Positions 808 to 44,437 are shown, numbered from the stretch's first letter. The stretch is DNA of 64,000 nucleotides from Amphiscolops sp. MND2022 (GCA_964187785.1 OZ076420.1:29326001-29390000), one strand, 5' to 3'. Notes: generated from the letters alone by a model not told the origin. A program made the numbers and translations.

Positions 808-899
808 ATGGTCCAAGAAAACGTCGTCGATCCTTTTCAATTTTTCTCTAGCTTCTCGGGTTCGCTACAAAACGTCTGTCTAACTTATGAATGTTTCAG

Positions 900-1425
900 A
901 CATACTGCTGCACATGCGCGAAACCAATATATGTTCATTAACTGTTGGACTCACAACCGGATTTGTTCTTTACATTTTGGTTGTAATCAACGAGCACTTC
1001 AAATCTCGTCTCAAGATTCCCATCCCTGCGGAACTACTTTGTGTTGCCATTTCTATCATCATATCTCACTTCTGCAAGTTGAGTGAAAAATTCAAAGTAG
1101 GTGTAGTAGGGCATGTTCCTACTGGATTCCCCGAACCGTCGGTATCTTTCTTCCATACACCTGCTCTAGATCAAAACTCCTCCATGATTTTGAGCAACGC
1201 TGTCACAATTGGGTTAGTGAGTTTCGCTGTCTCCTTGGCATTGGCTAAACTCTTGGCTGAGCGGCATGGGTATACCGTGAGGAACAACCAAGAATTAGTG
1301 GCTTTGGGCTTTGTGAATATTGGGACTTCCTTTTTTGGATGCTTCCCCTCCGCAGCCTCACCTAGCAGAAGCCAGCTGCAGAGCCAGGTTGGAGGGAACA
1401 GTCAGTTTGCCAGCGTCATTGCCAG
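900..1425 (+). CDS. SLC26/SulP anion transporter, internal exon (transmembrane domain); upstream exons lie outside the window
   Basis: Acceptor tttcag at 899 and donor gtataa at 1426. Translation includes IPIPAELL, GVVGHVPTGFP, GYTVRNNQELVALG and SPSRSQLQSQVGGNSQ, all characteristic SLC26 motifs. Confidence 0.93.
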
Positions 1426-1706
1426 GTATAATAATGTTTCAAACTTTTCCGTATAGAATTTTTTTCGAAGCCAAATAACGTACCAGGTTGTAATCAACAC
1501 TACTGAAATTTATCAATATGAGTATGATGTGTGAATTAATTGAATTTCCAGAGTTGGCTTTTTACCGTGAAACATTTTTTCCTGTTTTTTTTTCGGTCCA
1601 TCTTTTTTTCTCTATTATAATTTTTAGCTTTCAATCAAGGTTTTCCCGAAAAGTAGCTGTGCTTAGCGTTTTTATTTCTTGTCTAGAAATCATGTTTTTC
1701 GCGTTT

Positions 1707-2134
1707 TTAGTCAGCGCTTTTATTAATAAAAGAGCCCGGCTATTGGCCACTCGTTTTTTTCAAGACAGACTCGAAGCGACGAAATTTTTGTTCAGATTGT
1801 CCAACTAAACGAACACCTGGGAAACGCATCTAAGTTATCGCAAAGGGTCCCTCTTTCAGTTTTTACTTTTTAAACGTAACATACAAAACCAGATGAGACT
1901 GAAGGGTCCCCGCTTTCAATTTTTTCGGCGCTGAGACTTTTTTTCGAAAAAAATTTCGTCTTTAAGCGCTATATCCGAACTTCTGACGTTATATCCGAGC
2001 TATATTGCGTTTTTGTAAGGAGGAGGCGGAAGTCCGAAAACAGGAGTTTTTCATGAAAACGTCCTACGCATATTTCAAATCTGCGCTTTTTGAGCCTTAG
2101 ATGTAGCGTCGACTTTAGACGTTCCCGTCTTGTT
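1707..2134 (+). mobile_element. Non-autonomous Helentron-type element (HINE/DINE-1-like family), single copy
   Basis: 5' end agtcagcgc...ggct at 1709. 3' end gagccttag...gcgtcgact followed by hairpin agacg-ttcc-cgtct (2117-2130) and tgtt. Confidence 0.7.
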
Positions 2135-2559
2135 ATTTCTTGTCTAGAAAGGATGGTCCACGAGTAGCAATGAATGCATAAACTTCAAATACTTGCTTTT
2201 TTAAAACTCATCTTTTTCAATGCTCATTCAAAGTTCTTTGACAGCGGCCCCGATCGAAAGATGATCACTTTTAGATTGATTTAAATGGAGCCGGCTTCGC
2301 TTCATTTCTGAGAACTACATATACGAAGTAGCTCAAAATGTCATTTTTTGACGAGTTCGAAAATAGCCTTTTTTGCAAATATGCCTTACTTAATTACTTT
2401 CAAATCAAGCCTAATCAAAAGCTTTTGATATGTAGATTGGTGCAAGTGGGCCAGTTCTACGTAATATTGCTTTTTTTTATTTATGTTAGTCGGAAAACTG
2501 TGGAAAAACCACGTGACCATCTTCCGTTCGTATAGCAATGGTTTAGTCGGCGCTTCTTC

Positions 2560-4567
2560 AATGCAAGAACTGGTACCGTACAAGATTGTATAGACATAGA
2601 TGGCGAAGGACTTGAACCGTCTGAACGAACAAAGACTCTAAAATAAATACAAATGGCCGCTCACTGATTGACGTATGTAAGACAACTGATATGTTGATAC
2701 TGAATGGGCGAAGTGGCAAGGATAAAGGTGTTGGTAGTTTTACTTGTAACAATTACAACGGAAAGAGTGTGGTAGATTATATAATTGCGGACAGTTCGTT
2801 GACTGATAAATTAAATAACTTTGAAGTATTACAATTTGACCCAAGTTTATCAGACGTCCATTGCGGTCTGAAAGTTGAAATCTTAAGATGTGGAAGTTAA
2901 TAAAAACAATGAATCTTTCGTTGGGATGAAAAAAGTCTGGAATGATGTGTTAAAGTCCAGTTTTTTGAAGTCACTGGAAAATCAAGACCTTAGTAATATT
3001 TGTTTTTTGCTGCAAAATAAAAACGCAACGTTGTCTGAAGTCATTGAAATTGATCGAGAATTAAGACGTATACTTGTTAACTCTGCAGAAGTATCGAATG
3101 TTTTGCGTACCCCTTCTCGAGTGTCCAGAAAAAACCAATGATTCGACTTGGAATGTCATGTAAAAAAGACTGAATATAGAAGCAAGTGTAGGAGCTCGGG
3201 AAGCATAACTGAAAAAAAAGCAGCTCTCAAAATATACAAAAATTTCATAATCCTGAAAAAGAAAACGTTCTTGAAAAACTTCAATGAAAAACTATTGAGA
3301 CTTCGATCAAACAACTCCAAGGAATACTGGTCGGTAATAGGCAGTTTCAAAAAGAAAAGCCCCCTGCCACAATTAGATATTAAAACTTTCTCTGAACACT
3401 TTCAACATTTGCATCTGCTACCATCGAACTTTTGTGTTGATGAACTAGAGTTCCCAGAAGGGAACATCAATATTGAATTGAATAGAAATTTTAGTTATGA
3501 AGAGGTGCGAGAATCTTTGCAAAATCTTAAATGCGGGAAATCAGCTGGTCAAGATAGTATTTACCCGGAATTTCTGAAATATGTCCCTCTGTCCCTCGTT
3601 GAAGTACTTATTAGTTTTTTCAACCTAGTTTTAAATACAGGAATCGTCCCCGATGATTGGGCTAGGTGAACTATATGTCCAATTCATAAGGGAACAATGA
3701 CCGACCCTAATAATTACCGGGGATTTTCGTTGATTAATTGCATTGGAAAAGTTTTCTCGTCAATTTTAAGTACCAGGATCAAACACTATTTAGATTTAAC
3801 GAACAGAATTGGTTCGGAACAGGCTGGCTTTAGGAAGGGATACGGCTGTGGGGATCATACGTTCTCCTTGACTAAAATTCTATCTTTGTATTTGGCAAAT
3901 GGCAAACGAATGTACGCCACCTTTCTTGATTATGAAAAGGCATTCGATTTAGTCGATCGATCAATTCTTTGGAAGAAGTTACATGATCATAATATCAATG
4001 GTAAAATTTTCAATGTCATACGTGGTCTCTACTCGAAAACAGAAGCATGTGTCAGAGTGGGCAATAGTTATTCTAGTTTTTTCAAATGTGAGGTTGGAGT
4101 TAGGCTGGGTGATAATTTATCACCACTATTGTTCACAATTTTTGTAAATGACTTCAAAGCCTACTTGAAAAACTACTGTAAAGGATTGAGTTTTCTATCG
4201 AATTTACTGAAGAGCAACTCAGATGATGTCGACGAGGAGGAAATCTTTGCCCGTCTGTATGCAGATGATACCATTATTCTGACTGAAAGCGAAGAAGACA
4301 TGCAAAAAGCATTAAATGCTGCATATTGCACATGATCAATATTGCAGTAACTTTAACATTCGAATAAATTGTTCCAAAACAAAATATATGATCTTCTCCA
4401 GGGGAAAAGTTCGTAAATCGTCAGGGATGTTTATAAACAACAGCCCAATAGAAAGAGTTGACAGTTTTAGCTATTTGGGGATAATTTTCAAGTACAACAG
4501 TACCTTTCAATTAACGATAAAAAACAACGTTGACAAAGCGAAGAAAGTGTTATTTCCGCTAATGTAA
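2560..4567 (+). mobile_element. Decayed LINE (CR1/L2-group-like) fragment: end of APE endonuclease plus reverse transcriptase
   Basis: Across several frames: (F)NARTG, NGRSLIDVCK...LNGRSG, SVVDYIIA, SDVH (APE); KSAGQD, DPNNYRGFSL, EQAGFRKG, FLDYEKAFD, GVRLGDNLSPLLF, LYADD (RT). Broken by stops and frameshifts and truncated at both ends. Confidence 0.92.
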
Positions 4568-5085
4568 TCCCTAGCTAACGCTAAAGCGGCGCTATTAGCG
4601 ATTAGCTTCAAATCTCTGGTTTGTGATCTAAACAACTTGATTGCCTAATCACTCAAAACAGTTCTGTGGAAGAATTGGACATTAAAATATTTTTGTGAGC
4701 TTTCAATGAGCTCGAAAATTACTCGGAATAGCGTTTTTTAATACGAAAAGAATTTGAAAATTGTATTTTCATATGTATTAAGATCATATAATTATTTTCA
4801 AGAGTCTTTTACTTGCTGTATTCAAAACTCAGCTATGTAATATTAACAAAGACAATAAATTTTTACTTTTTCGGAGAATTGATTCCTTTTACATGTATTA
4901 AGATTAGTAGGTATAGGAGTAATTCTCCATGATTGTTGACTTGCTCCTGAAATTTGTTTCGGAGAAAACTGAAAGTATTGCATCAAGTTTAAGTACTTAA
5001 AATTCTAAAGTTGAGACCTGAAACAGCTCTGTTAATACATTCATAACGAAATTTCAAAAGTGTGATGTTGGTGATAGAAATTTCA

Positions 5086-6092
5086 AACAAGACGGGATCG
5101 TCTCAAGTCGGCGCCATATCTAAGGCTCAAAAATATTCAAAGAACAACTATTGGAAACATTTGGAAAAATTATTTTTTTCAAAAAAAATTTTGAAAATTT
5201 TTTTTTTCGAAAAAAGTATTTTTTTGGAAAGTCGCACAATGCCGAAAAACTCAAAAAGAGGCCATTCAGGCTCATTAAACGTTTTTACAAACCGAAAACT
5301 TCAAAAAAATGCAAGGGGTTACCCTTTGATAGAATCCGAAAATTTTCGAAAAAAATGTCGCATAGTGCCGAAAAAAAACCCAAAGAGGGGACCCTTTGGT
5401 CTCACCTGCTGTACTTTTGGAAGCATAAAAATATTATGGTTTAGTGCGAGAATCGAACCCCCGCTCTCCGGCTTGGAAGATGAACAAATATGAAAGATGA
5501 ACAAATTGTAAAAAGTGGACCATTCAGAGTGAGATTGTAGGCTGAAAAGGAAAAAAAACAAGACGGGAACGTCCCAAGTCGGCGCCATATCTTAGGCTCA
5601 AAAATATTCAAGGAACAACTATTGGAAAAATTTGGAAAAATTTTTTTTTTCAAAAAAATTTTTTGATTTTTTTTCCGAAAAAAAGTATTTTTTAGGTCGC
5701 ACAATGCCGAAAAACTCAAAAAGAGGCCATTCAGGCTCATTCAACGTTTTCTACAAACCGAAAACTTCAAAAAAAATCAAGGGGGTACCCTTTGATAAAT
5801 TTCGAAAATTTTCGAAAAAAAGTCGCATAGTGCCGAAAAAAAGCCAAAGGGGGGACCCTTTGGTCTCACATGTACTTTTGGAAGCATTAAAAAATTTATG
5901 GTTTAGTGCGAGAATCGAACCCACGCTCTCCGGCTGGGTCGAAGATGGAAGATGAACAAATATGAAAGATGAACAAAAATTGTAAGAAAAGTGGACCACT
6001 CAGAGTGAGATTGTCAACTGAAAAAAACAAAAAAAAACTACTCACTGTAAGAGTCGGGCTTTTTTCCTTAAGGGAAAAGGCGCCGACTAAAA
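5086..6092 (-). mobile_element. Head-to-tail pair of HINE-like elements
   Basis: Two reverse-oriented 3' ends (aacaagacggga...aagtcggcgccatatct at about 5086 and 5566) and one 5' end (...aaggcgccgactaaaa at 6080-6092). The bodies are near-duplicates with a period of about 480 bp. Confidence 0.75.
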
Positions 6093-6237
6093 ACATCCTT
6101 CTGTAAACTCAATGTAATTTCAATAAACTTTGTTAAACTATTTTAGACCCTTGTTGAGTTTTTATGCTTTTTAGTTAAAATGATTTTGTTTCGTGTCCCA
6201 TTTCTTCTTCACAGAACTGGCTGAGTTTTTGTTTCAG

Positions 6238-6361
6238 TGTGATGTTGCTGTGTGTTCTATTGTTTGCTGGGCCTCTTTTCACTTCACTGCCTTTCTCAGT
6301 GTTGGGTGCTATCGTCATTGTCGCCCTCCGTTCTTTTTTCAAACAGGCATTGCTGTTGCCA
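6238..6361 (+). CDS. SLC26 exon (TM helices)
   Basis: Acceptor tttcag at 6237 and donor gtgagt at 6362. Reads (S)VMLLCVLLFAGPLFTSLPFSVLGAIVIVALRSFFKQ; phase matches the previous exon (AG|T). Confidence 0.92.
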
Positions 6362-7111
6362 GTGAGTAATCTCTATATACTTACTGCCCTGAAATATGAT
6401 TTCAAAAATATGACAGGTAATTTTGAATGTACTAAATTGTATCATCGATGTTTTCCGTATTTTTCACATAATTTTCGTGGATAGGTATTTTCGAACAAAG
6501 TTGATAATCCTTCATTTTCGTTTTGTCTCTAGATCTTGGAAATGACGAAACGTATGTAACATGGTGCTAGATCAATTGGCTGATGGCGCTGTTGACCGAA
6601 TGTGAAGTTGGCCGACGAAATACATCAGAATATCGGAATTAGCCGTAAATGGAGCTCATAAAAAATTGAAAAGAAAAATAAAATTAGATTTTCGTAGCGC
6701 TCAGGAAATGAAACTGGTTTTGATTGAAAATCGTTTCAACTTTTTGTATCCTTTTGAATGAGAAATTGCAAACGTGTTTAGTATTGTTTACGAACGAATT
6801 TCTGATAACTTTTAATCCAATGCGAATTGCATAAAATTCAGAATACCTTCACTGATATCCAATCACATTTAATCGGGTCAGCTAACTGCTCGGTCGGCCA
6901 TTTGAGCAGACGGTCAATTGCACGGTCGCCATGTAACAAGCCATTGATATCAAAGATTGCATCACCGCGAAATCATCGGATGCTTGCTTGCTTTTCATTA
7001 AGAGAATTTTGAGAATCAACTTGATTTTGAAACAATTCTTGACTTTAAAATAGTCTTAGCAATACGTGGTATCATTTCGCCAATTGTTTTTCAAATTCAC
7101 TTGTAGAATAG

Positions 7112-7210
7112 TTTTGAATCAGAGACTTAAAATTTGAAAATCGGCACCCAATGAAGTCTGAAAAAAGCAGATTTGGGCCGATTTTCGAATTTTAAGTCTC
7201 AGATTCAAAA
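7112..7210. repeat. Small inverted repeat (hairpin or MITE-like)
   Basis: ttttgaatcagagacttaaaatttgaaaatcggc (from 7112) pairs with gccgattttcgaattttaagtctcagattcaaaa (to 7210): 34-bp arms with 2 mismatches. Confidence 0.8.
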
Positions 7211-8941
7211 TTATTTTTATATGCTCAGGGACAGTTTTATATTATTTATTTATAAATTATTTATAAATACTATTTTTATTTAAAACTGTTATTTATAAAT
7301 ATGCTCACGGACAGTTATTGACAAGACTCATTAATCTAGCACTATGGAAAAATAACCAAGAGATCACCCTTGAAACTCGGAAACGGTTTTCTTCAAAAAA
7401 CATAAAAGGTGCTCTCGCAAACATGAAAAAAGTTCAGTGCAAGATTCGAACCCATTCACTCCTGCTTTCAAACCACGAACTCTCCGGTTGGCCAAGTGGT
7501 GGAATAAGAAACTAAGAAATTCATAGAATGTGTCAGTTCTGTCTGAGACAGCTCGGACTAAAAATCAGATTCTGGATGGAGTCGACCTGGTGATAATATT
7601 ATAACAGAAACACCACGCTTTGGCTACTAGACTATCCAACCTTAGATATTTCAATGGAATGAACGCGGTAACTATTTTGGCCGATCCATGTAGCCTTCAA
7701 AATTTAACAGACAAAAGAATACTAATGTAGGTCAGCCCAGAAAAATTATTTCATCATATTAATCGAATGTGTGTCATTTTTCCAAAATTTAATCTGACTT
7801 GGTTTTTACTTCCTAATTGTTCTTTGTTCCTGATTTTTTGACATCGAAAAAAATTCTTTTGAAGTTTTTAAACATTTTTTTGCTTTGTCACTGGATTAGT
7901 GGTATGGTCAATAATTAACAAGCCGGGAACGGCCCAAGTCGGCGCCATATCTAAGGCTCAACAAGATTTTCAAATATGCAAAGGACAATTGTTATATTTT
8001 ATCAATTTCTCAGCGCCGAAAGTTAAATATCCCATGGGATACACATGACTGACTCGAAAATTTACAATTACACAATCATAAAAAAAATACATTAAATTAT
8101 TAGAACACAAGGCTGTCAACCTAGGAGCAGTCACAGGCACTATGCCCTACTAAATAACCGCCCTAACCGCTACTATTACTTCTACAAATACAATACATCT
8201 TTGAGGAGGTTCAGTTTTGGTAGGAGTTGGAATTTTCACGGAGGAAAACTTGACTGAAGTCCCTACAATGAAGACAATCGTTTCACGATATCTATATAGC
8301 GCACTAGCATGTACGACTAGAGTTCAGTTGTATCACAAAACGAGGTGCGAAAAAGTTAGAACAAAGATTTTATGTTCAACATAAGTGATGAAGTTGAAGG
8401 AAAGTAATGAAAAAGGCAACAAAAAGTTAGGTTGATCAAAAGAAGCGGCTCTCATAAAGGAACTTTCGGAGTTTTCTGAAGTTTTAACAAACCGACAGCA
8501 TCCGGTCTTTAGACAGGGTCAGAGCAGGGAAAATATCAAAGTTCAAGTCTTAGAATGGTGAAAAAACGAAGGAGAGCTGAAACGAGGGCACAACCCACAC
8601 GGGGTCCATCGTACTAAGTTTTTGGGTCCGACGAAACAGCTCAAATCCCAGGTTCTTTCACCAAATACAAAAATGAAAATGGAAAAAACTAGTCCTAAAC
8701 ATTGACAAATTGAAAGTTTCGGAAAAACATCGTTGATCATTATTAAGTGTTTGGCTATAAATGTCGATCTGCAAAGCAAAAAGAGTACGCAAGTTTTTGG
8801 CATTTCAAACTGAATTTTTTCCACCTCGTTACCATATTATCTCATTTATGTTTCCTTTTGAAAAACGTTTTGTAGCAGAAAGTGTATAATTGGCATCGTG
8901 TGAGCATGGACAAAATATAAATCAAAATGTATAAATCGAAG

Positions 8942-11900: not shown

Positions 11901-14900
11901 CCGGTGGAAACAAAAATAGTGGTAACATTTGATTCCTTTAGGTGTAGCTGGGGCAGCAGTCGATATGTGGCTTCACACGCGCTCAGCTGGCGATGACTTA
12001 GACGTCTTTCATTTGTTGTAAGAGGGCGGCGCTGCCTTGACTTTTATCATGGGATTTGATTGTTTCCCTCAGAGGATCTGTCATTCCAGTTTCATCTTTC
12101 GTATAGTAGTCACAAATATATGTAATGATGGCATAGGTGTCACAGCAAAACTGTAGATCTATATTGGCATCCCAAGCATCCAATCAAAGAGGATTGTAAT
12201 TATCAATGAAGAGTTCGTCGGAATTCCGCCTCAAAACAACAACTTTACCACCACGCGAAATTGACAGGGCTCGGTGATATTCATCCGACGTGACAGACAA
12301 CAAAGTGAAAAATTCATCGAAAGTTTCTGGCAATGTACTGCTCAGCAAAATTTGTTTGGCGTCAGACAAAATGTTGATTGATTTTTTGACTTGTTCCTTG
12401 TTCAAGTTCGCGCCATTAGGTTTAGCTATCAAGGTTTTTTGTGACGGGAGGCGAGGATAATTGAAGCGACAGTTACCACTCCGTTTCAGGCAAGATTTTG
12501 TATGATGGTGAACCTGTAGGTCAAGGACTTTCTGACGCAGGAGATCATGAGCAGGAAGTGAACAAGTGATAAACTGATCCACCAGATTGGGCAATTTGTC
12601 GTCATCCAGTGTATCACCCTCCATGAATTGTTGCATGAATGCTTGAGTTAGTCAAAGACATCCATGTACGTGAGCCATTCCACGCAACTGCATTTCTACA
12701 CGATAATTATAAAACTCTACAGGTAAACAGCCATCGAAGTTTGCCATAAGAATAGTTTTGATGAACAATTGTAAACGTTTGTTGAAGACACGAGTAACCT
12801 GAACCACGTGTTTCTTCAAAACATCTGCTCTTGCGATTGGATGAGCTTTTAAGAACTCTTCGAAAAGCGTTCCATCAACAAATACATCAATATTGACATC
12901 ATTCTCAGACAACTGGCTAGTGAAGGTAATTTCATGACCAAGACTCTTCAAAATACTGATTGACACTTCTTGCCATCGAACTTCAGCGCATGAAAGTGTA
13001 AAGAAAAAATGAAAGGGCTCCAACTGTTTTTCTTTCGCTGAGATGTCTGATCTTGCGACTCTCCAATACTGATTAGTTCCCCTCAACCGTTGAAATACAG
13101 AGAGAACTTCTTTTTGTGTAACAGAACATACACCAGAACTTTGCGTTTCTACTTTGCCGTTTTTTGAAAAAAAAATTTTCGAGCTGTTCTCTCTCGATTC
13201 GATGTTGAGCGGCAATAAGATAGGTTGAATCGGAGCTAAAGCGAGAGTCAGAATTCATGAATCTCTGAGTGAAATACTGGTGGGATGTTAACTTAACGGG
13301 TCGGTCTTCACTCAACGTGTTCCGATCTGAAGGGAAATAGCAAGGAAAAGCTTTGGCTTCGAAGTCTTTATTTTTCAACCAGTTTGTGGTACCTTATTTT
13401 CTCCGGGTGCCAAAGTAATACTTATCCATTAATTTGGTCTCGTGTGAGTGTCTCGACATTACGAAAGCAGTTGGGTTTTCTGGAATCAGGCAGGTGTCTA
13501 ACCCTTCATCAGTTTCCAAACAGCACTCTGAATCAAATGCATCTGTTATTTGTTTGTTACTGGCTTCATCGTCAATATGTACCTCCAAATTAGTCATGGC
13601 TGAACTGTCGATTTCAATATATTTGTAGTGTGGGTTTCCCAGTTCTTAAAACTTTTTCAAAGCGTTGATTATAGCAGTCGGGCGAACAAGTGATTCGGAG
13701 TGAACATTTTTCAAAACATTGGTTCGCTTCAGTTTAACATTTACGAAGAAGCTATCAGATGTACCACGAGGTTGTTGTTGACACAATGTCATCACAAGTG
13801 AGTGGAACATTGATAACGCGATCTTTGATTGCATACATTCTCGTACGAGGAAGACTGAAAATTTAAAGAAACAGCAAATCTTTGGCAACCAATTCGTCTT
13901 TTAAGTCGGTGAGGGTAAATTCATCAGTCATTTCGTCTTGTTCCAGTTTGTTTTTATTTGACATTGGCGGTAACGTTCCTTTTTTCAAAGCCTTCCTGCA
14001 AGTCCAACTCACGTCGATGCAACTAAGCGAATTTGAATTGAAGAGTTTGATGTCGAAGGGCAAATGTACGTCGTCAGAGTGCTTCCACTCTTTCACACAG
14101 TCTCCAAAAAAAATCCTTTGGCAGCACGAGCAATCGAACACCAAACCTGGCAACAATTGATGACGGAACAAACGAACCTGTCTTTGGAACAAGGACGACA
14201 ATCCTCGTTCAAGCGTATGCTTTTCCGTTCTCTGTTAGGATATTGTGGTACGGTTCTTCTGATAGGACACAGCCTTTTCAACTTTTCGGGCTTTCGCATT
14301 TTCCTGCAAGCTACGCCTAAATTTTATGGTTGTTCGATACTTCTCTTGTAAAGGTTGCTTGAGCTTTTGTTGGTAAGTTTCTTCCAGCCGAGGCTTCAAA
14401 ACTTCAAGATATTTTCGCCTCAATTTAAATGAGATGCATCTCGTAACGACGTTTCAACTTTTCAGCCAAACACTCTTTGTAACGACGTTTCAAGTTTTCA
14501 GCCAAAAACACTCTTTGTAACGATGTTTCATTTTTTCAGCCAAACACTCCTGGTAACGACGTTTCAATTTGTTAGCTAAAGAGAGATTAGTTCTCAATCG
14601 AGCTGCCAAGAGAATCCGATACTTTTCACTACTCAGCCCTGTTTTTCAAATAATGGGCTCTGTTGATGTGGTAACGACGTTCTAGGCGAGATAATTTAGT
14701 ATCCAGCTTTTTTGTTTGCTCTGACGAATCCAAATGTTGAAAGCTTTGTAGTGTTGTTTACAGCGACTGCGACTGAAATGATTTCGTGCTGTTTTTTTAT
14801 CAATGAAAGTTGCACCGCGGGTCTACTGTGTAGGTCCAAAAAATTGTTGAGACGTCCTAAATCTGATGATTCTGTGTTATCAACTAACATTGACTCTTCA

Positions 14901-15813
14901 TTATCAAGACGAGTATTCTTGCACGTACGTTTCAAGTGTCGGGATAGTGTTACTGAACTGGAGAAAGTCTTTTGACACTTCGAGCAACTACTCGGGACAG
15001 CACATTTTAGTCTCTTTTCGTTGGTATGTTCGTCACCAGAAATAGTGGGGGTAGAAATCCAAGACATTGTGCAAGGGATATCAGGCAAAGAAGAAGGCTG
15101 CGAAGCCTTTTTGTCGAAAATCGTGAAGAGCAACTCTCCAAAAAAGACTTCTTGCATTATTGATTGATAGAAATTCACCGAAGAACATTCGGAATGGAAC
15201 TGCTGACTCGAGTAGGAATTACATCTGAGACAATGTTCGATACTGCTTTTTTCCAAATTCGATGAAACGTAACATTCCATTTTGCCAGATGGTATTTCTA
15301 CGACGAATCCTTTGATTCCAGCAAACATGAATTTGTCGAACATATGTGTGTGACAATCCTTTGAACTAAACCCAACTGGTGTTCCCCTCACATGTGTATG
15401 GAGCCACCCCAGAAGTTTTGCCAGCTATACAGTGTTTGCCAAGGTACACAGTGTCATTTTCGTCGATTCCTGTGAACAAATACAAAGAAATCAATACGCA
15501 TAAAATACTAATGACAGTTTATGTTAAGGTATTATCTTGACGGGACGAACTTTAGGAATGAAATTGAAATGAAAAAATTTCGCTGTGCAACTATAGTGCT
15601 TTGAGATATAGCATTCAACAACTTACCATTGTCTTCGACATGACACGAGGAAGCTGATTGAGTTGGTAAAACAATGTCAGTGATGATTTCACAAGTGTCA
15701 CTCTGTGTTCCTAAAAGAAAAGCGAGAAGTTCAACGTGATTTCCATCCTGATCCACCGTAGCTGAAGACAACTGGAGAAAAAGCTCGAAGAACTTTCGTG
15801 GAAATAAAATCAT
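8942..15813 (-). pseudogene. Fragmented Helentron polyprotein: JAMM/MPN - Zn finger - DUF6570-like region - HUH Rep - PIF1 helicase - APE-like endonuclease
   Basis: Rep: CSCCQRIFF / CWTCRKAL..P.S..N.L, APGENKVP...EAKAFPCYFP...YFTQRF, FFTLSCAEVRW, YRVEMQLRGMAHVHG (HUH), QVHHHTKSC...CRFNYP, YICDYYTKDE, RQLSACEATYR. Helicase: GEAGTGKS, AATGMAA, IVDEMSMV, GDLLQLRPV, LPLRLAWGITCHKVQGQT, VYVMLSR. Endonuclease: SLNIQSL, SETW, VVGDF, GNELDLCF, YSDN. Many stops and frameshifts. Confidence 0.92.
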
Positions 15814-18800
15814 GAACCTGAAATGAAAGGTAAGAACAACTCAGAAACTGTAGAGGTTGTATCAATGGGAAAATGCGGCGAAAAAACACTCTTATGAAGT
15901 TGTTCTGAAAAAGGTAAAAACGAGAGCTAAATTGTAGTGAATTGCATTTATGACTGAACCTGAGCAAGGTCTAAACGGGAAGGCACAAAAATTGGAAGAA
16001 TTTCAGCATTCAACTTGATTTAATCAGAGCCTCAGAACCAAACGCATTCTAAAAAGTTCACATGCATCGACGAGATCGAAGCGTGTGACGAACGCAGTAC
16101 ATGATACAAAGCAAAAAGTTGTAATGACACAACACATTATGATAAACTCAGAAAAGTATAGAAATAACTAGTGGTAAAAGTATACACAACAAACTATCAA
16201 AAACCATGACTGATATGGAACGCTAACAAAATCAAAAAACTGAAGCAAACAAATTATGCCAAAAAACAACTGAACTCAAGACAAACGTTTTACTCAAAAC
16301 ATCTCATAGTCACTGTCGCTTGAAAACTCTTTGTATAAAGTCTCTTTCAGCAAATTGCGGTTAGATTTCCGACTAACTTCAACAGCCTGGCTGTGAGAGC
16401 GCTTTTTCGACTTTTTAGTAACTATAGTCTGCATGTCCGCCTTCTGATCGACTGTGGCCCCAGGATTGTGACCTTCAGACCGAGGCAGAACGGTGGAGAA
16501 TTGCTGGAAAATTTCACTGCTGTATCCGCTGGCGTCGAAAATTCGGCTGAAGGTTGTTTGGTTTCGATATGCTCCTGGACAGGATTTCGGGTTTTCTCCG
16601 GATCGCCAGCGACGAAAGAAACAGGATCCTTTAATTGCACACGAAGAGCCGAGTTGGAACAGCCATGGGTGTCATCAAATTCAATGGGAAGTGCAGCAAT
16701 TACTTCATCTACAGAGCTGTTGTCAAATGATATCAATGAACTTTACTCGGAAGATACTGCTTAGTTTGGCTTCTTTGAAGATATCTTTATCGTTTTCTTG
16801 ATCTCTGCATCATCACCTGTGACTGATATTTTCTTGAACAGGTTTCCAGCTGGAGCAGTTGAATTATTTCCTTCAGTCGAACTCCGTTGAAAAAAAAGAT
16901 GCTATTCCACGACTAGATTGAGGTTTCTGTGAGCTGCATTGTTCGATTTTGGGAGACTCAACTTACGGCATAGAAGCCTGTTCTCTGAGACTACGAATTT
17001 TCAAAGCATTCAGGTAATTTTTGTGAGCTCGTTGGGTAGCTTCATTTCGTGATGAAAACATTCGATGGTCACGATTGGCGCGATCAACTGATGCTTTGGC
17101 ATGAACCATAGCTCTTTCGATGGCTCCCAACAAAAGTTTTTCACCGTCATTAAGAACTGGATTATCTTTCAACTTCGTAGCTGTTGGCCTCTCTAAAACA
17201 GCTTGTTCAAACCTCGTCTTTGCCGAGAACAGAATATCATGGATAGTCTCCATATCATTGATGTGTTGAGACACCATGGAAGCCTGGTCAGTGTGTTTAC
17301 TTGTCATTGCAAAACCTGAAATTAGAGAAACTGCCTGTTTTGGATTAACAGCTAACTTCAACAACCATGGTCGCCATAATCACGACATTTTGGCGCCCGC
17401 ATAGAAAAAGGAATTCAACGCCTACTGCAAAACGGGTGGATTGTGAATTTAGCAACCGAGTCACAAATTCCAAAAAAAATAACTGTCATCAGTTTTTGAG
17501 CACCGAGGAGACGCAAAAAACAGCTTATTAATTTTGTTTTTGATATATGCGATCTTTTCTCTCAGTGGTACCAAATGATAAGTACTAAAATAGGAAGAAG
17601 TCTTCCCAAAAACACCTGATTCTGGAAAAACACAAAACAACTTGGACACAGGCGAGGCCGTGCTTCGCAAATACTGCGAAGCCGTGAAGGATCAAGGGTT
17701 AAGGGGCAAGACAGTTGTTCTACTTATTGAAAATTTTAAGAACAGCAGAAAACGGCCCAAATCAGGTTCCGAAAAACGATTGCTTGTCGAACCGCCCAAA
17801 AATGTCGTGAGTGGTTATTCCTCTCAGAAAGGGCCTGTATTATTGACGATTGCATGTTTCAAAATCTCTCTGGAATTGAATGTTGAATCAGGGATACGTT
17901 TGAACGTTAGATAATGGAACAACGTTAAAATTTAAAGTTATGACTTCGACAGGTGACGAACGTTGAACTCACTAGCACCTTTCCCAAGAAAACCGGAATG
18001 GAGTCCAGGTCAATTCACTTGTAATAAAAACAATGTGCCAAAAAAGCATAACCTAAGAAACTAAAAATAAAAATCAAACTTCAGATAGAACAATGAAATC
18101 AAAGCCAAAAGTCATCAGAAGATTCACAAAACTCCGAAAACTATGTAACATCATTGTGTCAAGCAAAAAAAATCATACCTAAAGGAACTAAATGTGCAAA
18201 ATCAATTTTCAAAATAATACAATCAGATCAAAAGTCAAATCAATCCACAAGTCTACGGGAAGAGAACCTTGAAAGATTCACTTTCGTTTGGGTAGTTCCT
18301 TATCAACTTTCTTCTTCAAGGATTGTCGAACTTTAAGCGGCAGGCAACGAGTTGTAGCATTTTGTTGAAATGCTGTTCGCAGATTTCTTTTCCTTCGTTT
18401 CTTCAGCGCTGTAAACTTTGCTTGCATGCAGCCTGTCGCTTCTATCACGGTAGGCATTGTGTTTTCTTTGGATACCATCTCGGAAGACGGGGTTTCGGAG
18501 TTGCAAATTGGCCGGTGTAAGGACAATCTTTTGTTTGTGGATGAAATTCTTCAACTTCAAAGCTCTGAAGAGGGCCGATGCAGTCTGATAAAAAAAGTAG
18601 ATTAGAGTTCTAAGAACGAAAGATTTTCAAACTAAAGGCATTAAATGTGGACTGAAATGCAGATGCTGAATCAGGATGAAAAGCAGAAAAAACGTACAAG
18701 ACAAGTGAATAATCTATGTAACCTACAGCATTTAAAATTTCACATTTCATCTTTATATTTTTAACATTAAAAATCAACCTCAGAGTTGTCGCAATCGACG

Positions 18801-19164
18801 TGAAGGATGAGATATCGATAGTTCGTGACTTGAACTTTAAATCCAGTAAATCCCATTGATTGAATCTGCTGGATGAAAAACTCCTTAGCTTCATTCTTGT
18901 TACGGTAAGACGACAGAAGATTGGATTGCATTCTGATACTCAAAAACCTCTGGTCATCAGACATGGGTTGCAAAGTAGAGGATGTTTTCATTCTGTCTGA
19001 AAAAGATGAGATGATTGAATTGAACATTCAAGTGAATAACAATTATTTGCATCACAAAGCTTGCAAAAAAGATCGGAAACATTCCAAAAAGGGCAGATAA
19101 TTAATAAATGTTTCTATTCCTGAACGATAGTAGCCCAGTGACAACAAACATATGCTAACCCGGA

Positions 19165-21040
19165 AGATGCTTTTCGAAATCGTATTAAATCAAATCAAGG
19201 AAAAATGGCGTTCGTTACAACATAGGATGATTCTGACTCGAAAGAAATCGAAAGAACCTCAAAAGTTTCGTCAGTCCTTGTATGAAAAGCTGAAATACCG
19301 GAAAAAAAGCCAGCAACCTCTGAAAATCTCAAGAGGTCCCTACAGGAAACAAAGGCAAAAAACTGGTTGATTATTTCGTAGCGAATGGTTCGGATAACGT
19401 TCATTCTCCGAAGAAAGATTTCAGCTTTCGTGAGGCTTCGCATATCTATTTTGTCATCATTAGCCGATTTGAGGTTGCTCGGAATGACCTTAGTTGAAGA
19501 AGACAAGTAACTAGAACACGAAAAGGTAGTGACAATAATATAAGATGAAACCAAAGAAGTTGCCGATTGACGAAAAAATATCGTAGAAAAAATTGTATTA
19601 CACATTTAGCACCACACGAATAGCGTTTAATGTTAACAACTCGATGAATATCACTTGGCAAACGAAAATTTGTTCTCGAAACAAACATTTTTGAGAGAGT
19701 GAATTGGTTGAAACATCATGGAAGTGCTCGATTGTATAGGCAACGAACTTTTCGTCTGAATTCTCAATTTAGTAGAGTTGTTAACATCGAATAGAATGTG
19801 AAGAAAAATCACAGGGGCAAAGCGAAGGGGTTATGAAAAATTTGGGCATAGGTTAACCACTAGGGCAGGGTTTTCCCATACACAGGTTCGACAATCCAGA
19901 AAAACTGGATCAGGGCAAGGTCGAACCCGGTTTGGGAAGTTTCAGATTTTAGGCTTAACTTGGAGTTTTCTTTTGAACAAAATCCAGAAAAGCTGTTCAA
20001 AATCGTATTAAGTGAATTGAAGCACAAATGGCGTTCGTTAATACTTGGGGTGATTGCTTCAAATTTGGCATTTTAGAACAGACAGGTGTCAGATATAAAA
20101 ACTGGATTAACTGACCGAAAAAAACTCGAAAAAACCTCGCAAATCTATTTTTGATTTTTAGCCGTTTTGAGGTTGCTCGGAATGACCTGGTTGGAGAGAA
20201 GTAACTAGAACACGAAGCGGTAGTGACAAAAAGTGAAGATGAAACCAAAGAAGTTTACGATTGACGAAAAAAATATCGTAGAAAAAATTGTACCACACAT
20301 TTAGCACCACACGAATAGCGTTTAATGTTAACAACTCGATGAATATCAGTTGGCAAACGAAAATTTTTTTCTCGAAACAAACATAACGGAGCGGTAGTGA
20401 CAAAAAGTGAAGATGAAACCAAAGAAGCTGACGATTGACGAAAAAAATATAGAAAAAATTGTACCACACATTTAGCACCACACGAATAGCGTTTAAAGTT
20501 AAAAACTCGATGAATATCACTTGGCAAACGAACTTTTTTCTCGAAACAAGCATATTTGAGAGTGAATTGGTTGAAACGTCATGGAAGTGCTCGATTGAAT
20601 AGGCAACGAACTTTTCGTCTGAAGTCTCAATTTAGAAGAGTAGTTAACATCGATTATAAAGAAAAATCACATGGGCAAAGCAAAGGGGTTGGAAAAAAAT
20701 TGGGCATAGGTTAACCACTAGGACAGGGTTTTCCCATACACAGGTTCGACAATCCAGAAAAACTGGATCAGGGCAAGGTCGAACCCGGTTTGCGAAGTCT
20801 CAGATTTTAGGCTTAACTTGAAGTTTTCTTTTAAACAAAATCCAGAAATGCTGTTCGAAATCGTATTAAGTGAATTGTAGCGCAAATGGCGTTGGTTAAC
20901 ACTTGGGGTGATCGCTTTAAGTTTGGCATTTAAAAAGGACAGGTGTCAGAATAAAAAATGGATTAAATGACATCGAAAAAAAACTCGAAATGACCTCAAA
21001 AGTTTCGTCAGTCTTTCTAAGGAAAACTGAACTACCTACT
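19165..21040. repeat. Diverged tandem array (~700-850 bp units) in the 5' region of the Helentron
   Basis: 19441-~20130 is repeated at 20141-~20990. The second copy has an internal ~180-bp duplication (20218-20555), and a partial third copy lies at 19165-19300. Confidence 0.85.
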
Positions 21041-22758
21041 AAAAAATTCGAAATTTTTGTAAAGTTTCATATTTTTTACATGTGTTTAACCTTGGGTGGC
21101 CCGGAACGACCTGCACGGGAAGGACTCGCTACTTTCGCACCCCTTCTACGTGCAACTTGCTAAGGTCTCGGACTCGACAGTCTTGGTACGCCATGTCTCA
21201 ACTGTTGAAATTTCCTATTTTGTCGTCGACATCAACTGCTGCAATCTTCAGCCTGACAAACCTTTTTGTTATGGCTGATTTGTTCCAAGATTTGCCGGAA
21301 CGTTTTTCGGGTAAACCTCGTATACTAAAAATTAAAACCTTGCTAGGTACATCATTACATGTTATATGAATGCATGAGCTTAACTTGATCATTAAAAAAA
21401 ACCTGTTTCGAAACAAGTGCAAATATAGAACTACTGCGCCTTATTGTCCTGTACCTTCTTTTGATTTCTGGCAGAAATTGAGGAGGAACAATTTTTTAAA
21501 AAGTCGCAAACACAATTGATTTTACCTCACAGGCTTCGGGCAGAAAAACAAGCAACGTACCTGAAAAAAAATAATTGGAGGAGGGAAAACAAAAACAACA
21601 TAAAAATTGAAGGGGTGACCTTCGGTGGAAAGAAAAATTGGGGTGATCTTCGGTGGGAAAAAAGGTTTTCCAACATCCATTTTGTCGGAAATCTCCGTAA
21701 AAATGAAGGGGGTACTCTGTGGTGGGGAAAAATTTTCGGAAAAAGTCGCACAATGCCGAAAAAAAAATTTGAAAGGGGGGACCCTTTAGTCTCGCCCGGT
21801 AATGTATGTTACGCGGAATATAGGGAAAACCTTTTTAGTTTAGTTCCCTGGGCCAAAGGCCAACTGGTGAAATTTGAAATTTTGTAGAACTTTTGGTAGA
21901 ACTATTTTGGTCAGTTCCGGTGGTCTTAAAAAACACTGACGAAAAGCCATGACTATAGTCGACTCTTTTCTAAAGAAAAGCGCCGACTAAAAAAGAGGGT
22001 GTTTGCGACCTTGAGCAAGTCACTATGAAAACACAGCTTCAAGCCGACCATTGCTTGATCCTTTGGCTGCAAATTTGGTACCATAGCGTACTGACTACTT
22101 AGAAAAGTAGAACTGCTTATTCGGCATCCACCCCATATAATTGAGGAAATAAACACTCGTCACGCACTGAGTTACATTTTGTTTAGACAAGATATGCTAA
22201 AACGAACGCTTTTCCACACTATCCAACGTTCCTCCCCTGAATGAGTTTCTAGTGTTTCAATTCAATAGTTGGAGAGATATTGCCGGTTTGTGGCCAGTGA
22301 TAAAACCAGTGGCTTTAACCATTGGTTGAGCAATTCGGTATTTCAAATCACCGATTCGGGTCAATTTGAATTAAATTTATCCGGTTAACACAGTACTGTG
22401 GATATGCACTAAAACATATAGCGGAAATTGCAAATTTGTTCCCAAAAACTTTCTCAAATTTGTTCTCAAAACCTCATGTGTTGAAACACCATGTATTGAG
22501 TATTACTGACCTTCTCGAATTCCAATTTACTCCTCTTTGAGTTTTCAGAAACTTCGAGTGTAATAAAAGTTTGTTTTGTTGGTCGAATTCGTTGTTCGTT
22601 TAAAGTTCGGTGTAACCGATGTGATTAAAAAGCATTTTCGAAAAAAAAACGTTTCGGCGAATTGTTTGATGCATTTGTTTCAATTGTATCACGACCTAAT
22701 TATCTCGTATGTTTGATCATTTGAAATGTTAGATGAATTGGCTTTCAATGCGTTTTAG

Positions 22759-23518: not shown

Positions 23519-24053
23519 AACAAGCCGAGAACGGCCAAAGTCGGCGCCATATCTAAGGCTCAAAATTTAAAAGGGGGACCCTTTGGGCTTTGTGAAACTC
23601 CAGCTGGTTGCAAAAAATTAAAAAAAATTGAAGGGGGGACCCTTTGGAGACATGAAAAAATTTCCCAAAATTTTTTTTAATGAGATTTTTGAAATCAAAG
23701 TGCCGAAAAATGTGAAAGGGGGGACCCTTTGCAATTTTTTGACATCCATTGTGTTGCAAAACATCAAAAAAATTAAAGGGGGGACCCTTTGGGGAAAAAT
23801 CTTCAATCCAAAAAGTTTCAAAAAGTCGCATATTTCCGAAAAAAGTGGGGGATCCTTAGTGTGATTTCGAGGTTGTGGACGTCTGTTTTGTTTTTTCTTT
23901 TCGTTTTGGACGCGCTTCTGAGGTTGGAGTTGTTGAGGTTTGACGTTGTTGAGGTTTGAGGTTGTTGAACAAAAAAGTGGACCTTTCGTGTCTAAAAAAA
24001 ACTACCCACTGTAATAGTCGGGCACATTTTCTACTAAAATGCGCCGACTAAAA
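23519..24053 (-). mobile_element. Complete HINE-like element
   Basis: 3' end aacaagccgagaacggccaaagtcggcgcc at 23519 and 5' end ...aatgcgccgactaaaa at about 24040-24053. Contains a short (gaggtt/gttgtt)-type microsatellite at about 23920-23970. Confidence 0.8.
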
Positions 24054-24273
24054 ATCTATATTGACACAAATAACAAATCGCACCAGACAGTCCAATAGAT
24101 TGTCGATAAGAAAGACAATTTTTCGTTTTCCTCTATGCTTTTTGCGTGTCGTAATTTATTATTGATTGCGAAAAAATTCGCTGTCCTCATTTGAGGACGA
24201 AATCACTGTCGAGGTTAAATGTTTTGTTGGTTCATGGTTTTAGACATTAATTGCACTTGTGTTTCTTTTTCAG

Positions 24274-24844
24274 AGTACCTCAAGTACTAATTTTTCGCTT
24301 CAATATGTCTCTGTTCTTCGCAAATGCTGAGAAGTTTCTGAAATGCTCCAAATCTTTCATATCTTTGAGATTGGCCCAGTGCAAAGAACGAAACGAAGAC
24401 TTGAAATGGATGATTGTCGATGGGAATCCTTTCAATTTTATGGATCATTCCGGCATCAATGTCCTTAGAAACTTACACGAGCACTGCAAAAACATGGATA
24501 TCAAGTTAATCATTACCAATTGTCGTTTTGACATCTTGATGAAGTTTCGCCAAGAAGGATTGACTGATGTGTTGGATGCCGATAGTTTTTTCCCTAGTAC
24601 CCACGATGCCATTCGGTTCATCGATGAACTGAGAGCAAAAGATGACCCCGCGAGGGAATCGAACTCCGGTATCCTTAGTGAGCTGAGTCCTGATTCCGAC
24701 AATGGACGGGATGGCGTGGAGCATAGTGCTCGGGTGTCTTCAGGAGGATCTTCGGTGGAAATGACAGAACAGGAACGTGATGTTGTTTCAAGTCTTCCTA
24801 GTTCAGAGTCTCCCCAGAAAAATGACCAAGACTCTTATGTATAG
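24274..24844 (+). CDS. SLC26 terminal exon (STAS domain)
   Basis: Acceptor tttcag at 24273. Reads VPQVLIFRFNMSLFFANAEKF...IVDGNPFNFMDHSGINVL...FFPSTHDAI (STAS), with stop at 24844. Confidence 0.93.
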
Positions 24845-31097: not shown

Positions 31098-31600
31098 TTT
31101 TAGTCGGCGTTTTTCTTCAGAAAAAAGCCCGACTATTACAGTCACTCGTTTTTTTTATTTTTTTTTCTTTTTTTTTATTTAAGACAGACTCGAAGCGACG
31201 AACGTTAAAATTAACGTTCAACCACTAAATAAGTACTAAACTACTGGACCGCTAAAGGCAAACGGGGAGCGCATTCATTTACTTTTTAAACGTTACATAC
31301 AAGCCCGGACGGGACTAAAGTTTCGTACCCCCCCTTTCGATTTTTTTTCGGCGCTGTGAGATTTTTTTTTCGAATTTTTTTTAATGTCCCCAAAGGGTCC
31401 CCCCTTTGAGTTTTTTGTTATTTTGCTACAGAATGCGTGTTTATAAATCAAAAAGGGTCCCCCTTTTACATTTTTCGGCACTGTCCGACATTTTCCGAAA
31501 GAATTTTTTTTTCGAAAATTTCAAGTTTTTTTCCAAAAAAAATGTTTTGCGCTTTTTGAGCCTTAGATATAGCGCCGACTTGAGGCGTTCTCGTCTTGTT
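31098..31600 (+). mobile_element. Complete HINE-like element
   Basis: 5' agtcggcg at 31102. 3' gagccttagatatagcgccgact-tgaggcgttctcgtcttgtt ends at 31600. Confidence 0.8.
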
Positions 31601-32269
31601 CAATATTTAATTTCGTTTCCGACTCTCCTAAATGAAGTTATCGACGGGGTTTGCAAATTTGGAGAATAGTGGTAAAGTTTGGTTTATAGGTTTTGGAAAA
31701 CTGACTGATTTTCGTGTTCAATAATTCTGTTTAAGCAGGAATATTGAAGCACTAAAATATAACTTTCCTCCTATTCCGTCTGTTCAGTTCTACTCAAATC
31801 AAACAGCTGGAATTCTTGACATAAATCGATTGATTGTTCGCTGTGAGCTTTGACTGCCTTCAAAAGAATGGCTGCAAAAGGTCACCATCGCTTATCATTA
31901 TCTCCTTTCATTCAAGTACAAAAATTTTTCTTTATTCAAGTACAAAAATTTTTCTTTATTCAAGTAAAAATACTTGTTTTCAAGGTTCGGATGCTTTCAG
32001 TTAAACTTGCACGTTTTAAAAATCGAATGGTGTTATTTCAACGTTTTATGCCTGCAATTGTTACTAATTCAAGTTGTATAAAAATGACATGTTATGCCGG
32101 AAACCGGCATGAAAATAGATATACATTTTGAAATTCATTTGGATTTTGCAGTTGAAATATTTCGAGCTCCGAAGGGCGGATTTGTGATGGTTTTCATTGT
32201 TACGGTTGTGTTCAATAAAGAGATTAGCTTTCCTTGAGACAAGTTTTCAATCCAACCATGATTCTACAG

Positions 32270-33545: not shown

Positions 33546-34760
<1,215 letters not shown>

Positions 34761-43500: not shown

Positions 43501-44437
43501 AGATGTTTACAGCGACGATTATGAAAATTGTGCGCGAAATTTCATTTGTGCAATAAGGATTTGCAATTTTGAAAATGTTTTCACATATCCCATATGGAAC
43601 ATCAACATATCCCTCTCATTGCTGTTTTATAAAAGCATTAATGTTATAATGCTTTATGTATCGCAATATCTTGCAATTCTTCAAAATTTGTTTTTTATTG
43701 TTCCAATTTTCATCATCGGCACTATAGTTGAGAAACCCTTATTTTAACAAGTTACCCTAAGGTGTTTTAGACAGCGTTTTCAAAGAAAAAGCAAGACTCT
43801 CACTGACCTTTTTTTCTCCAGTAGCTCTGATCCGTCCACTTTTACGGAGAACATATGGAGCAAATGTTATTCATACGATGAAGTCCTTTTGCCTAGCCAG
43901 CACGCACGCTATGTCCAAACTTTTGACGTTATATTCGAAGTAAATTGCGTTCTATCAAGGAGTCGGAGGTTCGTAATATTGCTCTATAACCAATTTTTTT
44001 AGACCAGCGAACTGACAGTTTTTATGAGCATTTCTATAAGTTAGTAACTTTTCTCTGCCACTTGGCCCAGTGGTTCCCGTGGATTTTTTGTCCTGGTGGC
44101 GAGTTCTGAGAAACAGGAGTACGTGCGTTCGAGTCTCGCACTAAACCAAAAACAAACCGGGAACGGCATAAGTCGGCGCCATATCTAAGGCTCACTTCTC
44201 GATGTTTTCGGCGTGGAGTCCAAAGAATGACCTTATTGAATATTTTGTGGCCTGTTTCAGTGGATTTCTGATTTATGTTTTTCAGTTTGAAGTTTTCCAT
44301 CAAATATAACTAGAATTGCCTCCCTGTGTTATTTTTAGCAATCGTCATTCTGGTTTTGAAAACTTTCCTTGGTGTTTCAGTTTGACCCGAGATTCAGAAT
44401 ACAAGGACGAAAGGATGAATTCACGGATCGCAAGTGA
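40528..44437 (+). CDS. COA5: Cytochrome c oxidase assembly factor 5 / PET191 (3 exons: 40528-40632, 43286-43384, 44381-44437; 86 aa)
   Basis: All junctions are phase 0 GT-AG. Protein ...PPCEAIRTKMVDCFRFSDCYTR|DKKSIRECL...DECKALAAQLYHCKRSV|FDPRFRIQGRKD... has CX9C pairs and the conserved CKRS-x-D-x-R C-terminus. Confidence 0.88.

Follow-up and report, generated by a model that had tools for sequence, protein, structure and literature searches.

The JAMM-Coding Region

On the minus strand of a 64,000-nucleotide stretch of the Amphiscolops sp. MND2022 genome (GCA_964187785.1, OZ076420.1:29326001-29390000), referred to below as the window, lies a Helentron whose polyprotein begins with a domain of the JAMM (MPN+) type. 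The order of the polyprotein is JAMM/MPN+ domain, C2HC zinc fingers, Lys/Glu-rich linker, DUF6570, HUH Rep, PIF1 helicase and endonuclease (as shown in Table 1). The window copy is a dead pseudogene, in which about ten further frame switches are scattered along the polyprotein downstream of the JAMM part; in active elements the domain would probably act as a zinc isopeptidase on ubiquitin or a ubiquitin-like modifier. In all searches, the window pieces were kept separate, or natural intact relatives were used as queries.

The JAMM domain is encoded by two exons separated by a phase-1 intron. Exon 1 encodes the motif NHVELLAF, in which the codon of the candidate catalytic Glu is found by translation at 15732-15730. 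When the intron is removed, the frame is kept (..VEDNG running into IDENDT..), which corresponds to the continuous sequence found in intronless relatives such as the protein P0006. About 50 nucleotides (nt) beyond the intron, inside the JAMM domain, there is a one-nucleotide frame change within ~15424-15410 (-); past this change the window frame reads LGWLHTHVRGTPVGFSSKDCHTH and stays open for 242 codons (15424-14699, -). A sequence-only reading of the window, made before this analysis, had described exon 1, the 157-nt GT-AG intron and the frame change, and its description was accurate in every detail checked. Exon 1 shares 52% identity with the N-terminus of P0006 and 60% with the first exon of L012, a related locus from another sample. 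Since L012 is interrupted at the same codon position and in the same phase by a GT..AG intron of ~69 nt, the window intron is a feature of the lineage and not a private insertion.

The same locus is present in a second assembly (L003), which is 99.4% identical including the flanks and shows an identical frame pattern. Moreover, four public sequencing runs of one sample yielded contigs that span 15370-15667 with zero differences. Because L003 and the contigs of the four runs agree with the window, errors of assembly are excluded as the source of the frame change and of the intron. At 15207-15308 and 15703-15761, the run contigs also show a second copy, ~90% similar and of similar depth, whose similarity breaks off a little way upstream of the start codon, near 15804.

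Identity of the Domain

Relatives were collected by an exhaustive phmmer search with the 242-amino-acid (aa) piece against 1.84 billion cluster representatives, in which 77 related proteins were found at E <= 1e-3. From the family a 16-member alignment (A1) covering the complete JAMM domain was made, to which exon 1 was aligned by hhalign with an E-value of 3.3e-17 (columns 6-67) and the second piece with an E-value of 5.8e-28 (columns 92-202). That is to say, the match of the window pieces to the JAMM family, as judged by profile alignment, is far beyond chance. Pfam JAB (PF01398) is recognized at E <= 0.01 in 33 of 74 family members, and P0006 passes the gathering cut-off (28.3 bits against 22.5). 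Since the window pieces alone reach significance neither with Pfam JAB nor in the PDB (where phmmer matched the second piece to Sst2 at no better than E 0.58 and exon 1 to nothing), it is the family profile that carries the identification. The MPN/JAB match that the sequence-only reading had expected was thus absent for the window pieces by themselves (Pfam) and present at the level of the family, to AMSH-LP, STAMBP and Sst2.

When the A1 profile was compared with the PDB, the first match was AMSH-LP (2ZNR, 7L97; E 2.7e-20), for which profile positions 3-193, the whole catalytic domain, were aligned, followed by STAMBP (E 7e-19, positions 3-177) and Sst2 (E 4e-16, positions 3-156). The alignments to RPN11 (E 4e-11) and CSN5 (E 3e-8) reach only positions 148 and 129, respectively, and the one to BRCC36 (E 6e-4) is confined to positions 82-135. 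Both insertions of AMSH-LP (Ins-1 and Ins-2) are spanned by the profile, and the RPN11 and CSN5 alignments lack the AMSH-type second insertion. An AlphaFold (AF2) model of residues 55-270 of the natural intact protein P0011 was predicted with a pLDDT of 91 and a pTM of 0.87. In Foldseek, every one of the top 24 PDB matches of this predicted model is a structure of AMSH, AMSH-LP or Sst2 (target-normalised TM scores 0.75-0.83), and the probability is 1.00 to AMSH, the Prp8 MPN domain and related structures, so that the predicted model has the MPN fold. AMSH-type proteins whose MPN domain is C-terminal lead the matches among the AFDB clusters, with identities of 18-22%. The feature search of the ESM Atlas was uninformative, giving only unnamed or Prok-JAB clusters with scores of ~0.9; word-indexed homologue searches added few members, none of them named, and no named entry for the JAMM family was found in the protein collections searched. 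With the branch assigned by the ranking of profile E-values and fold matches, the domain is best regarded as an AMSH-like MPN+ domain, which within the AMSH-like subfamily makes up a distinct branch carried by Helentrons.

Proteins of the JAMM fold act on a variety of substrates, and RPN11 and CSN5 are significant matches as well, so it should be considered whether the domain is active on something else, either by processing its own polyprotein in cis or by removing another ubiquitin-like modifier, for example NEDD8, as CSN5 does. It has been reported that the VTD domains of Helentrons cleave NEDD8 besides ubiquitin (PMC9741609), and polyprotein cleavage has been proposed as one possible role of OTU domains (PMC4067079). 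Against this stands the consistency with which the best sequence and fold matches fall in the AMSH branch, including the AMSH-specific second insertion, and no ubiquitin-like domain that could mark a cis cleavage site was found by Pfam in P0011. Activity on another substrate is therefore considered unlikely, and the reading as an AMSH-like isopeptidase is preferred.

The Polyprotein and Its Relatives

Residues 58-2025 of P0011 are colinear with the minus strand of the window from 15810 to 9297 by tblastn, with many frame switches. As the sequence-only reading had stated, the frame of the JAMM domain runs on through the first zinc finger (14986-14921); it is open as far as 14699, and the finger pattern CxxC..H..C is kept in the family consensus. 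In the Lys/Glu-rich linker (14645-14238, -), which lies between the zinc fingers and DUF6570, there are imperfect repeats of ~12 residues (..LK.KLKEKY..); the corresponding linker of P0002 is far longer (residues 270-500). Pfam calls DUF6570, which is known from the part upstream of Rep in Helitrons, in P0011, P0018, P0014, P0032 and P0041. In the window itself, Pfam recognizes Helitron_like_N (PF14214) with 63.9 bits on 13215-12652 (-) and PIF1 (PF05970) with 36.6 bits, above its cut-off of 25.9, on 11048-10770 (-); Exo_endo_phos was not called by Pfam on the decayed window pieces, though it is called in relatives. Within the region linking Rep and helicase, ~300 bp (11997-12296) are missing from the otherwise 99.4%-identical L003.

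The intact relative P0011 is one uninterrupted ORF (open reading frame) of 2152 aa on a metagenome contig, in which the JAMM domain occupies residues 55-270 behind a leader of 54 aa, and in which Pfam finds DUF6570, Helitron_like_N, PIF1 and Exo_endo_phos. The same order is found in an intact ORF of 2165 aa (P0094, encoded at L007 and L008) and in another intact ORF of 2152 aa (P0078, encoded at L009), as well as in L012 and in L002, a locus from an NCBI genome assembly with a single frame switch. It is also found in L004, which comes from the same sample as L003, has no intron in its JAMM part and is much more divergent; L004 shows that a second JAMM-Helentron lineage exists in that sample. 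In short, JAMM is in line with Rep at every related Helentron locus examined. The domain begins at residue 1 in the window ORF, P0006 and P0018, and in these three and P0011 no MIT domain was found, nor the STAM-binding part that goes with it in AMSH. The JAMM-ZnF-Rep-PIF1-EN polyprotein postulated by the sequence-only reading is thus borne out by the colinear intact ORF of 2152 aa, by five other loci and by the enclosing Helentron termini, and JAMM and Rep are in one intact ORF in P0011, P0078 and P0094.

These relatives also bear on the idea that chance placed the JAMM part beside the Helentron, be it as an AMSH-type pseudogene of the host or as a recent private capture. Helitrons do capture gene fragments (as described in the main text of PMC11417382), and the window copy is broken, which would suit such an origin. 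It is nevertheless hardly credible, since the three intact proteins join JAMM to Rep, helicase and endonuclease without interruption, JAMM has the same position in L002, L004 and L012 and lies within the termini of the element, and the identity to cellular AMSH proteins is only 18-22%, with no MIT domain. Given the intact fused ORFs from independent samples and the six loci that share the layout, a host pseudogene or private capture was rejected.

In addition to the complete polyproteins, there is an ORF of 601-602 aa (L005:388-2196, L010:432-2237, L011:18-1826) in which JAMM and the first finger are joined to a C2H2 array. Its JAMM and first-finger module is 53% identical to residues 1-374 of P0011, and Rep is absent within 3 kb downstream. 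This ORF recurs, 99% identical, as a repeated unit of ~2.4 kb in several metagenome samples, and its dN/dS is 0.24-0.41, though few differences underlie this value. A derived or domesticated gene is one possible explanation of the ORF, a non-autonomous element another.

Active Site and Selection

The window copy keeps the Glu, both His, the Ser and the Asp of the active site, together with all residues of the putative second zinc site, so that the catalytic Glu, H-x-H and S-x-x-D reported from the sequence alone are all present on translation. In A1, the candidate catalytic Glu is found in 13/13 of the sequences that are reliably aligned there; both active-site His, the Ser, the Asp, the His two residues beyond it (D+2) and both Cys are each found in 16/16, and the remaining His in 15/16. 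The pattern H-[ST]-H-V-...-S-S-[IV]-D occurs in 67 of the 77 relatives, with a spacer of 8 residues in 66 and of 9 in one. The canonical spacing HxH-x7-SxxD is thus not the one found, the family having x8, and in the HMMER alignment this appears as a one-residue insertion relative to AMSH-LP. The extra residue in the spacer, which the sequence-only reading had noticed in the window copy, is correct and a trait of the whole family. Three residues for which a role in binding a second zinc is putative, namely the His (D+2), the first of the Cys and the His that follows it, are aligned by HMMER with positions of AMSH-LP. In the AMSH-LP structure, those positions are part of the second zinc site. 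The last putative ligand is Cys in the Helentron JAMM and His in AMSH.

Selection was estimated between P0011 and P0094, which represent two intact families in the same assembly (ERZ27293226), with JAMM domains 78% identical. The nonsynonymous divergence (dN) is 0.136 for JAMM, 0.156 for DUF6570, 0.158 for Rep, 0.214 for PIF1 and 0.216 for the endonuclease, that is, JAMM has the lowest value among the domains; its dN/dS of ~0.11 is a rough figure because the synonymous divergence (dS, 1.22) is near saturation. According to these comparisons, JAMM is kept under strong purifying selection in intact relatives. Between P0011 and P0078, there are 3 nucleotide differences over 6.5 kb; because the two are near-identical and both intact, recent activity is suggested.

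A non-catalytic MPN scaffold, which would bind ubiquitin or a host partner without cleaving it, as Prp8, RPN8 and CSN6 do, might be imagined from the non-canonical 8-residue spacer and from the Prp8 MPN domain being the next structural match group after AMSH. MPN-minus domains typically lose their metal ligands. In the present family, on the contrary, the Glu, both His, the Ser and the Asp are invariant across ~65 clusters sharing <50% identity, and the lowest dN of the polyprotein is that of JAMM, which makes a mere scaffold quite improbable and agrees better with a catalytic isopeptidase.

The Mobile Unit and Its Termini

The features by which a Helentron is recognized were all found: HUH Rep, downstream PIF1, a C-terminal AP endonuclease, and subterminal inverted repeats (subTIRs) with a 3' hairpin, a T-rich site and HINEs. 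At the 5' side, BLAST homology extends to 21993, where the last bases are a run of T, and the conserved sequence begins at ~21988. The 5' end reads T followed directly by AGTCGGCGC; close to the 3' end stands its reverse complement, GGCGCCGACT. The subTIRs are 9-10 bp long and their flanks are T-rich. The 3' terminus is kept at at least 12 sites within the window, and among the copies the arms of its hairpin show compensatory changes (GCCG/CGGC versus GACG/CGTC). Two elements of ~500 bp, located at 52253-52751 and 53286-53764, have both ends in common with the Helentron, and at least 10 further sites of the window have the same 3' end. Since the JAMM exon lies well within the unit from 7917 to ~21988, JAMM is co-mobilised with the Helentron.

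HINE-like 3' ends are located at 5086-5137, 5557-5608, 23519-23563, 31552-31607, 44151-44194, 46655-46733, 47254-47301, 48806-48884, 49405-49452 and 56091-56140. In the repeated 5' part of the element, a 171-bp unit occurs twice at 20212-20554. Pfam found no domain in the ORFs of the 5' region (15900-21600), and there was no RPA or OTU ORF among them. At 17468-17835, the summed contig depth is 2000-7700 in all four runs, against ~90 in neighbouring sequence, which points to a very high-copy repeat in the 5' region of the Helentron.

Table 1. Features of the JAMM-carrying Helentron, in the order of its minus strand (positions counted from the first letter of the window).
Feature	Position	Strand	Remarks
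Whole Helentron	7917 to ~21988	-	~14 kb; ends common to small elements of ~500 bp
5' subTIR, AGTCGGCGC	21988-21980	-	followed by short palindrome CTTTTC..GAAAAG; kept in small elements
Internal duplicated and tandem repeats	19169-21036		5' part of element; self-BLAST, TRF
Exon 1	15813-15627	-	187 nt, starts at ATG; start codon of polyprotein and N-terminal half of JAMM
Intron, phase 1, GT..AG	15626-15470	-	157 nt; GTAAGT at start, CACAG at end
Start of exon 2	15469-15095	-	C-terminal half of JAMM; translation, hhalign to A1
HxH	15400-15392	-	His 15400-15398, His 15394-15392; translation, window copy
Conserved Ser and Asp	15367-15365; 15358-15356	-	translation, window copy
Putative second zinc site	15352-15350; 15232-15230; 15196-15194; 15187-15185	-	His, Cys, His and Cys, respectively
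C2HC/C2H2-like zinc finger	14986-14921	-	same open frame as JAMM; Pfam zf-C2H2 E 4e-4, under gathering cut-off
Second finger-like motif (..NHFSRSRCK..) and Lys/Glu-rich repeat linker	14822-14238	-	other reading frames; colinear with P0002 residues 222-585
Cys-rich region, DUF6570 equivalent	14186-13620	-	tblastn of P0011 residues 368-567
Rep (HUH) domain	13422-12037	-	P0011 residues 646-1125 align, 39% identity
PIF1-type helicase, frame-broken	11646-9557	-	colinear with P0011 residues 1293-1937
AP-endonuclease remnant, C-terminal	9521-8951	-	end of polyprotein; tblastn with endonuclease regions of L004, L002 and P0094
3' terminus	7964-7917	-	subTIR GGCGCCGACT at 7946-7937; hairpin ~7934-7921; end ..CTTGTT

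Genomic Surroundings

The Helentron is antisense between two exons of an SLC26-like transporter gene, exons of which flank the region with a Sulfate_transp domain at 887-1456 (+) and a STAS domain at 24251-24844 (+). Together with a reverse-transcriptase fragment (3697-4335), it appears to lie antisense within a ~23-kb intron of this gene. Farther along the window there are a protein kinase of 377 aa at 33627-34760 (+) and an Abl-interactor homologue of 624 aa with Abi_HHR and SH3 at 36889-38763 (+), each as one uninterrupted ORF, which may be intronless genes or retrocopies. A BEL/Pao retrotransposon is located at 57315-63723 (-), with an open pol ORF of 1309 aa (Peptidase_A17, RVT_1, Integrase_H2C2 and DUF5641) and a gag-like ORF containing DUF1759.

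Proposed Function

The reading preferred here, to which a probability of roughly 0.8 is given, is that JAMM is the N-terminal part of a single Helentron polyprotein, dead in the window copy, and that in active elements it would be a zinc isopeptidase removing ubiquitin or a ubiquitin-like modifier. Its target might be the transposase itself, or host proteins at the site of rolling-circle transposition. It is speculated that deubiquitination would shield the machinery of transposition against degradation or damage signals triggered by ubiquitin, which is the same job as that proposed for the OTU and VTD deubiquitinase domains in other Helentrons. The isopeptidase role is proposed because the VTD domains of Helentrons are active deubiquitinases (PMC9741609).

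Several points weigh against this reading. First of all, Pfam JAB is not matched by the window pieces alone. Secondly, the x8 spacer departs from the canonical x7, the geometry of the metal site being assumed from the predicted model, and the isopeptidase activity of the JAMM family is itself a prediction. Thirdly, the dN/dS value is rough owing to the near-saturated dS mentioned above. Finally, splicing and expression were sought in the four runs holding the sequence, in which no joints were found; since the contigs are even and intron-containing, the runs behave like genomic DNA and are evidence of splicing neither way.

As for linkage, resemblance to AMSH is what suggests specificity for K63, as supposed in the sequence-only reading. 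A linkage preference is not predicted here, because the extra residue falls in the loop by which AMSH-LP makes contact with the proximal ubiquitin.

A wider proposal goes further. According to it, the one class of deubiquitinases that are metalloproteases has been recruited by Helentrons besides the published cysteine proteases of the OTU, VTD, UCH and Ulp1 types; the JAMM branch, with its HxH-x8-SxxD spacing and AMSH-like insertions, would be an active, linkage-selective deubiquitinase that the transposon needs because the host blocks rolling-circle transposition by way of ubiquitin; the repeated convergent capture of unrelated deubiquitinase folds would mark ubiquitination as a general host restriction on Helitron-like elements; and the Rep-less L005, L010 and L011 would be derivatives moving towards domestication. 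This proposal is tentative and, taken as a whole, rather doubtful.

Comparison with Known Systems and Significance

The closest cellular counterparts are AMSH/STAMBP, AMSH-LP/STAMBPL1 and Sst2 of S. pombe, which are JAMM/MPN+ deubiquitinases specific for K63 (2ZNR, 2ZNV, 3RZU, 4JXE). The predicted fold is the same over the whole catalytic domain, Glu, HxH and SxxD are in common, and both AMSH-type insertions are covered by the alignment. In contrast, the Helentron JAMM is only 18-22% identical, its spacer has 8 residues where that of AMSH has 7, and HMMER aligns its two insertions with 11 and 5 additional residues. It also lacks the MIT domain and the STAM-binding motif, and it stands at the N-terminus of a transposase polyprotein, whereas the AMSH domain stands at the C-terminus of an endosomal protein. 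The Helentron JAMM would work in the manner of the AMSH catalytic domain, but with no MIT domain, ~20% identity and an x8 spacer it is, on this comparison, not an AMSH orthologue.

Among transposons, OTU and VTD (Herpes_teg_N) cysteine deubiquitinase domains are known to be carried by Helentrons (PMC4067079; PMC9741609), and UCH and Peptidase_C48 domains in Helitron-like elements have been listed by HELIANO in the main text of PMC11417382. The published accessory domains of Helitron-like elements, as far as covered by PMC4067079, PMC9741609 and the main text of PMC11417382, include RPA, OTU, EN, VTD/Herpes_teg_N, UCH and Peptidase_C48. Experiments have shown that the VTD domains of Helentrons are active deubiquitinases, and the authors concluded that helitrons benefit from deubiquitination by different classes of deubiquitinases (PMC9741609). 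The transposon type of the JAMM element is the same as that of the OTU and VTD Helentrons (Rep, PIF1, AP endonuclease, subTIRs, 3' hairpin and HINE derivatives), and there, too, a protease of the ubiquitin system lies upstream of Rep in the same polyprotein with its catalytic residues kept across families. The difference lies in the class, which is a zinc metalloprotease of the JAMM fold here and a papain-like cysteine protease there. Since VTD, UCH and Ulp1-type domains have also been published in Helentrons (PMC9741609; main text of PMC11417382), the analogy with OTU Helentrons drawn in the sequence-only reading should be widened accordingly.

The architecture of Helentrons and HINEs has been described as subTIRs, a 3' hairpin, a T-rich insertion site and short non-autonomous derivatives (Thomas et al. 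2014, PMC4067079). The present element agrees with the canonical one: a subTIR of 9-10 bp lies near the 5' end and again ~20-30 nt before the 3' end, the 3' hairpin is short and the insertion site T-rich, tandem repeats occur internally, and short non-autonomous derivatives abound (PMC4067079). It differs in the spliceosomal intron of the JAMM-coding part, conserved in position in two lineages, and in being without an RPA or OTU ORF.

No description of JAMM in a Helitron-like or other eukaryotic transposon was found in the literature searched, subscription papers, Repbase and Dfam being outside the search. The words JAMM, MPN and JAB do not occur in the main texts of PMC11417382 (its supplementary domain table being outside the check) and PMC4067079, and in PMC9741609 JAMM appears only as a cellular class of deubiquitinases. 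Together, a family-level MPN match, the domain standing in line with Rep and the lack of any catalogued JAMM-Helitron in the literature searched mean that none of the three outcomes named as contrary in the sequence-only reading (no MPN match, a domain separate from the element, a fusion already catalogued) was encountered. What is new is a lineage of Helentrons whose deubiquitinase domain belongs to a new class, as well as a new branch of AMSH-like JAMM domains. Because the copies hover around the Pfam JAB cut-off, surveys of single copies by Pfam thresholds could miss the domain.

The new AMSH-like branch has an atypical active-site spacing, and its natural intact copies can be expressed and assayed. 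For Helentrons in general, the presence of an unrelated zinc-metalloprotease deubiquitinase fold in the same position, under the strongest constraint in the polyprotein, strengthens the view of deubiquitination as a core need of the transposon and not an accidental cargo.

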